In this document: positions 13,907-16,195 of the stretch, piece by piece | How positions within the stretch are numbered: the stretch's first letter is position 1 | Layout of the letters: every line of letters starts with the position of its first letter | Program-made: the position numbers and the translations under genes | The notes under the pieces: generated by a model | What the model saw: the letters and a program-made list of their open reading frames with translations, nothing else | The model's database searches: none | Told to the model about the DNA's origin: nothing | NCBI GenBank assembly: GCA_013115145.1 | Contig: JAAPAO010000286.1 | Coordinates: forward strand, 1-42,841 | Length of the DNA stretch: 42,841 nucleotides | Direction: 5' to 3' | DNA from: Perkinsus chesapeaki ATCC PRA-425 | Taxonomy: Eukaryota > Protista > Perkinsozoa

Positions 13907-14768
13907 TTATTGAATTAATCGATCAAGGTCCAAGCTGAAGCCGCAGACGGTAACGATGCGAATAGCGTACCTGACCGCCATGTATGCGCAATCGCATGGA
14001 AGGGACTTCCTACAAGAGACAATCTGACACCTCCTCCGCAACTGGATCGTTATTGTTACTCGTACTGTTCACCGGCTCCACCAACAACTCACAGAGTTCC
14101 CCTACTTCACCGCACAGCGCCAGAGTCAGATTACTGTGAGGTCGGAATTTCAGCGCGCAGGACTGGCGAACTCACCGTGGCGTGTGATACTGAAGCCAGT
14201 CCCGTGCTTTGGCAAAGTTGCTCATCTCCTCGGCCATCTGACCAAGCGTTTCCACCGCATGAACCTCCAGAGCTCCTCCTGCTTGGCGAGCATGGCTGTA
14301 GGATTTGTACTCGTCGTACTTGGCCGAGGAACCACGTACGATATCTAATTATCAGAGTACTCCCGCCAAGCGATGCAAAAAGTAACACCAGCAGGGTATT
14401 TGCGCTTGTTCTTGGCCATCTTCAGGCCAGCAGCCTCGGAGACATCCACGCCCACACAGTTTGCTGTTATTAGTAGAAGTCGAAGAAGATCATGCAGACG
14501 ATCATGGAGCTTCTCAGCTTCACCTGCCAACATGTGACTACACAGGCCTCCCACCACAGAGCTCACCTTCACTCAAGTCGACGCCGCTGCGACCAGTATC
14601 TCCTTTCCACTGGAGCGTCTCAGCCACCAACCCTGCAGCTCGCGCCACTCTGAGCCCGCAGACCGCAGGAGATGAAGCCGCCTTTCCTAGTCTCTTCTGT
14701 ATCTCTTTAAGAGGCATGCTAGTGGCATCATTATCTCTGGCCGCGAAGGATTGATCTATTTCGACCAT
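13907..14768 (-). CDS. DCTPP1: dCTP pyrophosphatase 1 (MazG-like all-alpha NTP-PPase) with two tandem modules, 5 exons
   Basis: Module 1: AETLQWKGD..DLLRLL..GVDVSEAAGLKMAKNKRKYPA|DIVRGSSAKYDEYK. Module 2: FAKARDWLQYHTPR|NLTLALCGEVGELCEL..EEVSDCLL|YAIRIV..LIQ*. Four short GT-AG introns with consistent phases. Confidence 0.88.
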
Positions 14769-14875
14769 TAAACTCCAGAAGCCGTGTTGCACACAGCAGT
14801 ACCTTCCGGGTTTTCTAACAAGTGCACTCGCAACACAAAGCCACTGTCCCGCAGAGTCAACTTTAATATACATTA

Positions 14876-16195
14876 TCATGTCGAACCAGCACTGTCGATA
14901 ACATACTCTGGCTTAACATCACCTAAGCATCAATGTTATGTTTGCCATCGAATTGAGTGTTACTCTCAGCTAGCTCGGCTTTCGAGCAACAGCCGGACAA
15001 GGCCAGACAGGAGGCCACCCCGGCGCGCTTGGCCATGAGGATGTCTGTGTCGAGTCTGTCCCCAATGACTATACTTCGTGATGCATCAAACCCTTCTTGG
15101 TCAATAACAAACCTTAACTGAAAGACGGTAGACTAATGAGTACACTACATTCGCCAGACGACTCACAAAATCTGGGTTTGGCTTCCCCAGCACTTCAGCC
15201 TCTTCCCGTCCGTTCATCCTCGCCACGGCATTCAAAGATGCCAGTATAGTGCCCTGCAATAGAACGCCTCAGACTGCAAAGCGCAAGGACCACTTTTCGG
15301 GTTAAGCTGCCGAGATTAGCGATTACAGTTGCCGGGATCCTCCATGGCCCTATCTGGTCAAACATGTCATCGTTGGTGGCATAAAAGAAGAAATTATCAT
15401 TCTGAGCCAACTCGAACGCCAAAGATACCCTGACACATCCCAGAAAAATGATGCCCGACGATGCAAGCTCATACCGGCAGAGCTTATTAAACGAGAAAGC
15501 TAGGTCCCAACCTAGCACGATACCATCAATCTTCGGGCTTGAAGATTCCGTCATCTCATCCGCCATAACCCGGAATTTCTCCTCCGTCATCGTAGTGTCG
15601 CCACCTGAGCATGAATGATCAGACGCCGCAGCAAGCCCGTTTGAGTGCATTTGATGGACCTCAGCGTCCATACCGTGGATGCTGCTTTGACGTACAGTCT
15701 CGACTCTGCCCTTCAGTTACGCAAGTGATCCCCAACTCGCTGAGCTCGTCCACAATGCCTCGGCCACCGATGACGTAGCTGAGCAAGAGCCAGCAGCAGC
15801 TTGCACACCATTGATGCTGGATGGAATATGATTACATACGCCGAGCATCGGGGTGCCTTTCTTTGACAACTCGCGCTGCATAATAACAAGATGGATGCAT
15901 CATCTCCTTAGAGGTCAGCTCGCTCAGCCCGAGGTCGGCGAACTTAGACCACATGTCGGAGCGAGATCTCGAGCTTGTATTGGTTACGAAGGTATACTAA
16001 CGAGTGTTACAATCCTTCTCTTCATCACACCGAGGTTACCTTCTTGCCCTTATTTCTCAACAACTCCAATGTGGTCTTTACGCCACTTATTAACTGACCT
16101 CCTTGCCAAATCACACCATCACAATCGAAGATGAAATTATCGTATTCATCAATAAGGTCACCTATTGATGACGATAGCTCCCGTTGCTGCATCAT
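14876..16195 (-). CDS. HAD-superfamily class IIA phosphatase (PGP/pyridoxal phosphatase/4-nitrophenylphosphatase-like), multi-exon
   Basis: Motif I FIFDCDGVIW, motif II FVTNTS, cap region GIVLGWD..FSFNKL and FYATNDD, motif III GKPNP, motif IV VIGDRLDTDILMAKRAG, C-terminal VKPEYVIDS. Confidence 0.92.

Follow-up and report, generated by a model that had tools for sequence, protein, structure and literature searches.

A gene of Perkinsus chesapeaki ATCC PRA-425 encodes two modules of the DCTPP1/MazG type on one chain, and neither module carries the complete set of motifs from which the active site of dCTP pyrophosphatase 1 (DCTPP1) is built. This raises the question of whether the product could have a working site and, if so, which residues of each module would contribute to it. 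The gene lies in a window of 42,841 nucleotides (contig JAAPAO010000286.1), the whole stretch of DNA that was analyzed here. Human DCTPP1 is a cancer drug target, and most crystal constructs lack its flexible C-terminus. An enzyme with its core and its C-terminal lid on different, covalently linked modules would offer a handle on which elements act in trans and on how many sites are required, and such fusions also inform how homo-oligomeric enzymes become asymmetric single chains.

The gene runs on the minus strand from 14768 to 13907 and consists of five exons, which amount to 690 coding nt and specify a product of 229 aa; the four introns (43, 44, 42 and 43 nt) all begin with GT and end with AG. 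Exon 1 (14567 to 14768), which is covered by spliced RNA, carries the start codon, a short remnant of helix 1, a degenerate EXXE helix (RAAGLVAE) and a retained LQWKGD. It is followed by intron 1 (14524 to 14566, phase 1), the position and phase of which are the same in P. olseni. Exon 2 (14389 to 14523) encodes helix 3 of module 1, helix 4 and KMAKNKRKYPA; it matched a MazG-like Pfam family with E = 0.031, and the PDB sequence search aligned it with MazZ, AF1178 and DCTPP1 chains. Beyond intron 2 (14345 to 14388, phase 1), exon 3 (14176 to 14344) encodes the end of the module 1 tail, DIVRGSSAKYDEY, the linker and the start of helix 1 of module 2 (DWLQYHTPR), and the junction of the two modules is located inside this exon, where the frame is open. 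Intron 3 (14134 to 14175, phase 2) has an in-frame TGA at its donor, and the motif HTPR-NL runs across it. Exon 4 (14014 to 14133), with the GEVGELCE, the ELLVEP that lacks QW and the EEVSDCLL of module 2, matched Pfam MazG with E = 0.061. Intron 4 (13971 to 14013, phase 2) has an in-frame TAG at its donor, and the sequence joined across it, SDCLL-YAIRIV, corresponds to the canonical SDVLLYLVRL. Exon 5 (13907 to 13970) encodes the end of module 2, YAIRIVTVCGFSLDLDRLIQ, and closes with a TAA stop (13909 to 13907) ahead of any KN..KYP tail. Within the protein, module 1 comprises residues 18 to 125 (14307 to 14717, minus strand), the inter-module linker residues 126 to 144 (14250 to 14306, minus strand) and module 2 residues 145 to 229 (13910 to 14249, minus strand). 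An Rfam search and a tRNA scan of the four introns gave no match, and no second DCTPP1 copy was found in the window.

The 5′ part of this model agrees with RNA sequences. Three 454 metatranscriptome contigs (two samples of one study) and one contig labelled ‘organism A’ match the window with 100% identity. Introns 1 and 2 are skipped exactly in the three metatranscriptome contigs, and the exon 2 join is contained in contig X5. The 5′ ends of the three contigs run on past 14805 with 18 to 21 extra letters, which we take to be the reverse complement of a spliced leader of the dinoflagellate/perkinsid type; the final three letters of this leader match genome positions 14805 to 14803. Because the leader is joined at the AG at 14804-14803, within a stretch of acceptor and 5′UTR at 14769 to 14805 (minus strand), the mRNA is trans-spliced, its 5′UTR is 34 nt long (14802 to 14769) and free of an upstream ATG, the ATG at 14768 is the first after the leader, and module 1 thus has no hidden upstream exon. 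The RNA libraries are labelled RT-PCR, and the exact leader letters may stem from a primer. In the other direction the contigs extend to 14267 and, in the case of the fourth RNA contig, to 14204, which is residue 160 in the first helix of module 2, so that the RNA spans the module 1 tail through to helix 1 of module 2. One transcript and one chain, as a preliminary description of the locus had assumed, are what the single ORF on a trans-spliced mRNA with RNA running into module 2 indicates. The contigs, identical to the window and derived by RT-PCR and 454 sequencing from a source given as ‘marine metagenome’, point to transcripts of the organism in those environmental samples. RNA coverage ends in exon 3; introns 3 and 4 and the stop, which lie outside the contigs, were assigned from motifs that continue across the junctions and from positions, phases and a stop that are conserved in two relatives.

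The first of these relatives is P0002, found by phmmer with exon 3 as the query against 1.84 billion representatives. Its NCBI label, ‘dCTP pyrophosphatase 1 [Perkinsus olseni]’, hides a two-module architecture: P0002 and the spliced window model share 65% identity along their full length, and the layout and the end of the two proteins are alike. The P. olseni gene (L001) is interrupted by four introns, which agree with those of the window gene in codon position and phase but have lengths of 176, 52, 83 and 146 nt (L001 2542-2717, 2853-2904, 3068-3150 and 3274-3419) versus 42 to 44 nt in the window. The second relative, L004 from a Logan assembly, has five exons alike, an MVE start that follows an in-frame stop, and a stop directly after ...DLEKLLAYQ, at the position of the window stop. 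The preliminary description had proposed a search for the same architecture in perkinsids, and it was found in this way: both relatives share the gene, its intron positions and its stop, and a further protein, P0028, has the same module order. The Perkinsus proteins matched by a P0002 query were two fusion models only, and the same search found single-module DCTPP1 proteins of green algae at E ~1e-21. Two of the P. olseni annotations look like errors: the annotated start of P0002 precedes the conserved MVE start, which the leader fixes in the window, by 16 codons, and P0006 (374 aa) runs through intron 4 into non-coding sequence. Downstream of the stop, tblastn detected no tail-like coding sequence in either the window or L001; VMADNRMLLPHLL (frame 2, about 13810 to 13770), considered as a degenerate second tail, was rejected on this result.

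Single exons gave weak matches in Pfam and PDB sequence searches (E values from 0.03 to 1.5, with the Pfam matches below cut-offs), and these were rejected as stand-alone evidence because the exons are too short. Pfam on the ortholog P0002 reached 18 and 15.9 bits, under the cut-offs of 27 and 22 (PF12643, PF03819 family). We built a local profile from 14 single-module DCTPP1 proteins and ran it on the spliced model. The profile matched twice, at residues 45 to 135 (profile positions 72 to 164, 77.7 bits) and at residues 144 to 222 (profile positions 37 to 124, 79.0 bits). Judged by these profile matches, both modules belong to the DCTPP1/MazG-like family.

We then assigned the catalytic motifs to the two modules using human DCTPP1 numbering, which was checked against PDB alignments. 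Module 2 contains DWLQYHTPRNL (161 to 171), GEVGELCE (177 to 184) and EEVSDCLLY (202 to 210). Human F41, W47, F50 and H51 are represented in it by F, W, Y and H, three of which (W162, Y165 and H166) correspond to residues of the base pocket; the EXXE...EXXD metal acids (human E63, E66, E95 and D98) are present as E178, E181, E203 and D206; and human E69, E94 and Y102 are retained as E184, E202 and Y210. Module 1 fails in the same comparison. It has RAAGLVAE (43 to 50) where GEVGELxE is expected, DRLHDL (75 to 80) where EELSDV is expected, and a shorter GKAASSPAV in place of the DWxQxHxPRN stretch, so that its helix is eight residues shorter and F41, W47, F50 and H51 have no counterpart. A44 and L47 occupy the positions of E63 and E66, D75 that of E94, R76 that of E95 and L83 that of Y102; E69 is matched by E50, and D98 by D79, which is Ala in P. 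olseni. What module 1 retains is LQWKGD (52 to 57), with Q53-W54 at the position of human Q72-W73, and KMAKNKRKYPADIVRGSSAKYDEY (102 to 125), in which K102, N106, K109, Y110, P111 and G117-S-S-A-K-Y122 correspond to human K121..N125..K128-Y129-P130 and GSSAKY. Module 2 has ELLVEP at the ELFQWK position, that is, VE for QW, and ends in ...SLDLDRLIQ-TAA, about eight residues short of the expected KN..KYP. There is thus one copy per chain of the C-terminal lid (K..N..YP plus SSxKY), and it resides on module 1, as does the only equivalent of Trp73 (W54). Since the module 1 core and the module 2 tail are both degenerate, the site that they would form is dead on both sides; in the opposite pairing, the module 2 core with the module 1 tail, every part is present. 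The complementary motif loss that the preliminary description had read from the sequence alone was therefore upheld, all of the motifs that it quoted being present after the four introns are removed.

The reciprocal motif loss is conserved in the window, P. olseni and L004, and RVARAAGLVAETLQWKG is identical across all three taxa. When the window is compared with P. olseni, identity at third codon positions is only about 40% and dS is saturated, which makes the dN/dS of roughly 0.1 in both modules approximate; module 1 has a dN of 0.26 and module 2 one of 0.19. Amino acid identity to P. olseni is 67% in module 1, 75% in module 2, 35% in the leader and 47% in the linker, the least conserved internal part. 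These substitution patterns indicate that purifying selection acts on both modules, and module 1, conserved well above the leader and the linker, is no decaying remnant.

For the fold, the P. olseni ortholog P0002 was used as a stand-in for the window protein, whose spliced sequence served for the alignment, the local profile and the codon comparison. Alignments A1 and A2 were dropped because MAFFT had stacked all the single-module sequences, along with window exons 1 and 2, on module 2; folding relied on A3, which is deep over module 2 and shallow over module 1. The resulting AF2 model is all-helical, with a mean pLDDT of 70 and a pTM of 0.69. The helices of both modules have pLDDT values of 80 to 90, and the leader and the tail-plus-linker segment (residues 117 to 148) are below 50. 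The top 19 Foldseek matches of the model were DCTPP1 chains, with module 2 39-43% identical to human and mouse DCTPP1. Foldseek found no chain that spans both modules, but such chains were found by VIA-align among 48,161 PDB chains. The first two matches were the single-chain dUTPases 5myd_A (Z 9.4, 139 residues aligned) and 1w2y_A (Z 9.1, 130 residues aligned), both with a span of 33/34-243; for helical bundles such Z values are modest, and the matches rest on predicted models. The top VIA-align matches as a group comprised dUTPases, RS21-C6, AF1178 and MazZ. The two modules are accordingly predicted to pack into a single bundle like that found within one dUTPase protomer. The part of the AlphaFold comparison proposed at the outset that concerns packing is supported by the predicted model of the ortholog, with both modules in one dUTPase-like bundle; the part that concerns the tail falls, together with the linker, in a region of pLDDT below 50. 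W54 and Y110 of module 1 would presumably contact the module 2 site.

The search with P0002 also gave eight two-module proteins with the opposite module order (P0019, P0030, P0032, P0035-P0038 and P0040), in which a tail-less live module is followed by a module that lacks the acids but has the complete tail. They are from metagenomes, with the addition of one MMETSP transcript, P0019, which is a complete ORF on L002. P0028 has its modules in the Perkinsus order. In all 11 of the two-module proteins, which represent two to three fusion events, the tail is on the acid-less module and is missing from the module that has all acids, and in each of the dead modules K..N..KYP..GSSAKY is conserved better than any other part. 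The Trp equivalent to human W73 is distributed differently: all eight opposite-order fusions carry it on their live module, and in P0028 the dead module has Phe at this position. What holds generally is therefore only the placement of the tail on the dead module, and a trans role of the Trp from module 1 would be specific to Perkinsus.

In a tree of a 69-column core, the live and the dead modules of the opposite-order proteins form two clades (UFBoot 86 and 100), and the matching internal order of these clades points to one old fusion. Module 2 of P0028 also falls into the live-module clade, despite the Perkinsus order of that protein. The Perkinsus modules are neither sisters nor grouped with the opposite-order fusions and are placed among single-module proteins on long branches, which suggests that the Perkinsus fusion was an independent event. 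It may have come about by internal duplication, as the preliminary description had it, or by the joining of two paralogues. The AF2 model of P0019 (pLDDT 79, pTM 0.82) matched 5myd_A with Z 9.9 (148 residues aligned) and 1w2y_A with Z 8.9 (154 residues aligned), and both dUTPase matches were well above unrelated rows. We tentatively propose, as a reading that could turn out either way, that an asymmetric single-chain DCTPP1 arose at least twice in protists and that the dead module was kept only as the donor of the lid and, in Perkinsus, of the Trp as well. A hydrophobic C-terminal stretch, which may be a tail anchor, follows the GSSAKY tail in P0019, P0032, P0036 and P0037/P0056 (alignment A4). 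P0028 (L003 5001-6104) is an intronless-looking ORF that adjoins an HSP90 gene; its tail is seemingly split by an in-frame unspliced intron, with VSKSQ...DYQ between KYPIELCK and GKSGKYTEY. The 16-mer FAIDRDWLQYHTPRNL is common to P0028 and P. olseni, and P0028 may come from an environmental relative.

Several elements of the DCTPP1 site are described as coming from neighboring subunits. In the human enzyme Trp73 is contributed by the adjacent monomer (PMC13291643, PMC13616921), and three chains take part in the mammalian active site, where Tyr102 and Tyr129 are assigned to a further monomer (PMC13616921). Tyr129 hydrogen-bonds the alpha-phosphate (PMC13291643), and Asn125 reads the 3′-OH (PMC2954211). 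In MazZ, the base- and ion-binding residues of helices 1 to 3 are from one chain, and the pocket is completed by K76, N80, W85 and A92-H95 of a second chain (PMC8342488); the K...N segment of MazZ aligned with the KMAKN of module 1 at the sequence level. The idea that QW and the tail act in trans, put forward in the preliminary description, is therefore supported by the literature for the Trp and by homology to MazZ for the tail, whereas its assumption of a single partner conflicts with a mammalian site made by three chains. It follows from the three-chain site that the donor of the Trp and the donor of the tail may be different neighbors. A point against a composite site of this kind is that the equivalents of Tyr102 and Tyr129 are on different modules here, as opposed to the same neighboring monomer in DCTPP1 (PMC13616921).

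One interpretation of these results, which we consider probable, is that the Perkinsus gene encodes a single-chain asymmetric DCTPP1 with one composite site made from both modules. The modules would fold back on each other and form the bundle that is ordinarily formed by two separate subunits. Module 2 would give the base-reading helix (W162, Y165 and H166), the four Mg acids (E178, E181, E203 and D206) and Y210. Module 1, lacking metal ligands and a base helix, would have no site of its own and would be retained as a trans donor, its K..N..KYP..RGSSAKY lid closing over the sugar and the phosphates and its W54 acting, in Perkinsus, as the stacking Trp. As the reciprocal site is dead on both sides, there would be one active site per polypeptide, and the probable assembly would be a pseudo-tetramer of two polypeptides, with two sites rather than four. 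The elements of this model that we infer are the pairing of modules within a chain, the action of the tail and the Trp in trans, the oligomeric state and a pyrophosphatase activity of the dCTP type.

Alternatively, module 1 might be a structural partner only, an obligate dimer interface, with the tail and the Trp contributing to stability, to regulation or to the binding of another ligand. Such a role would fit with module 1 helices that are confidently modelled and packed, with the low confidence of the tail in the model and with a Trp position that differs among fusion types. We regard it as unlikely, given that across two to three fusion events the tail is what every dead module conserves best and every live module lacks, that the equivalent MazZ segment lines the pocket of the partner (PMC8342488), and that Tyr129 of DCTPP1 touches the alpha-phosphate and Asn125 reads the 3′-OH (PMC13291643, PMC2954211). 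In another scenario the fusion has no activity of its own, or is active solely in mixed oligomers that include a canonical DCTPP1 from elsewhere in the genome, and would act as a regulator or pseudoenzyme. Module 2 indeed has neither a Trp73 equivalent nor a tail, yet three taxa have retained all of its metal ligands and base-pocket residues, the only Perkinsus proteins recovered with P0002 were the two fusion models, and the window holds no other copy; this scenario appears decidedly improbable. A gene-model artefact, in which two genes or a decaying duplicate were misjoined or a 3′ exon that gives module 2 a tail was missed, could be sought in introns 3 and 4 and the stop, which lie outside RNA coverage, but is hardly tenable with a junction inside one open-frame exon crossed by RNA contigs, a start codon fixed by the spliced leader, a stop and intron phases alike in two other taxa with saturated synonymous sites, no tail-like coding sequence downstream in the window or L001, and a dN/dS of roughly 0.1 in both modules.

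The composite-site DCTPP1 can be compared with several known systems. Mammalian DCTPP1/RS21-C6 (7MU5, 6SQW, 2OIE) is the best structural match of module 2, at 39-43% identity, and shares DWxQxHxPRN, GExGE and EExxD with module 2 and QW and the KxxxNxxxYP..SSxKY tail with module 1. It differs in that each chain has a single module and the homotetramer contains four equal three-chain sites (PMC13616921), in contrast to the two unequal fused modules of Perkinsus. The single-chain ‘dimeric’ dUTPases (C. jejuni 1W2Y, staphylococcal phage 5MYD and L. major 2YAY) are the best whole-chain match of both fusion types and likewise hold a four-helix bundle in one protomer (PMC2954211); they have about 10% identity, another substrate and other extra helices, whereas the Perkinsus modules are still recognizable as DCTPP1 copies. 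The premise that MazG enzymes are single-module proteins, from which the preliminary description had started, does not hold: EcMazG and Mtb-MazG have tandem MazG domains (PMC10014863), and dimeric dUTPases are thought to have been derived from a MazG-like ancestor through duplication (PMC2954211). The tandem MazG proteins of E. coli (3CRA/3CRC) and M. tuberculosis (7YH5) resemble the fusion in having two domains with the acids concentrated in one (PMC10014863), but they belong to another MazG subfamily without the KYP..GSSAKY tail, no split of core and tail has been described for them, and they gave weak one-module structural matches (3cra_A, Z 4.8, with the P0019 model; 7yh5_A, Z 5.6, with the P0002 model).

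MazZ of cyanophage S-2L (7ODY) was the best PDB sequence match of exon 2 and also has its core on one chain and a pocket completed by the C-terminal K..N of the tight-dimer partner (PMC8342488); unlike the Perkinsus protein, it is a single-module homotetramer, (d)GTP-specific, with two extra beta-strands. The opposite-order protist fusions share the live module without a tail, the acid-less module with a tail and the dUTPase-like predicted fold, but they have the live module first, QW on the live module, a loop Trp (human W84) retained by the dead module, and clades of their own. No paper on a tandem DCTPP1 or on a Perkinsus DCTPP1 was found in the literature. Tandem MazG proteins and single-chain dUTPases were known already; a DCTPP1 with its core and lid sorted onto two fused modules appears to be new.

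If asymmetric single chains did arise at least twice in this way, these fusions would amount to a natural complementation experiment in which the DCTPP1 lid works in trans and half of the tetramer sites are dispensable, and to a replay of the presumed route from MazG dimers to single-chain dUTPases. Going by the sequences matched, the fusion may be the only DCTPP1-type dNTP-sanitizing enzyme of Perkinsus, a parasite of oysters and clams, and its architecture is unlike that of the animal hosts’ enzyme. Directly upstream of the fusion gene, on the same strand, all three Perkinsus-type loci carry a gene for a HAD-type phosphatase that was identified with Pfam (Hydrolase_6 / Hydrolase_like; window 16028-16195, minus strand; L001 507-1062; L004 1350-1532). 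The phosphatase and the DCTPP1 could form a pair that acts in sequence, from NTP to NMP to nucleoside.
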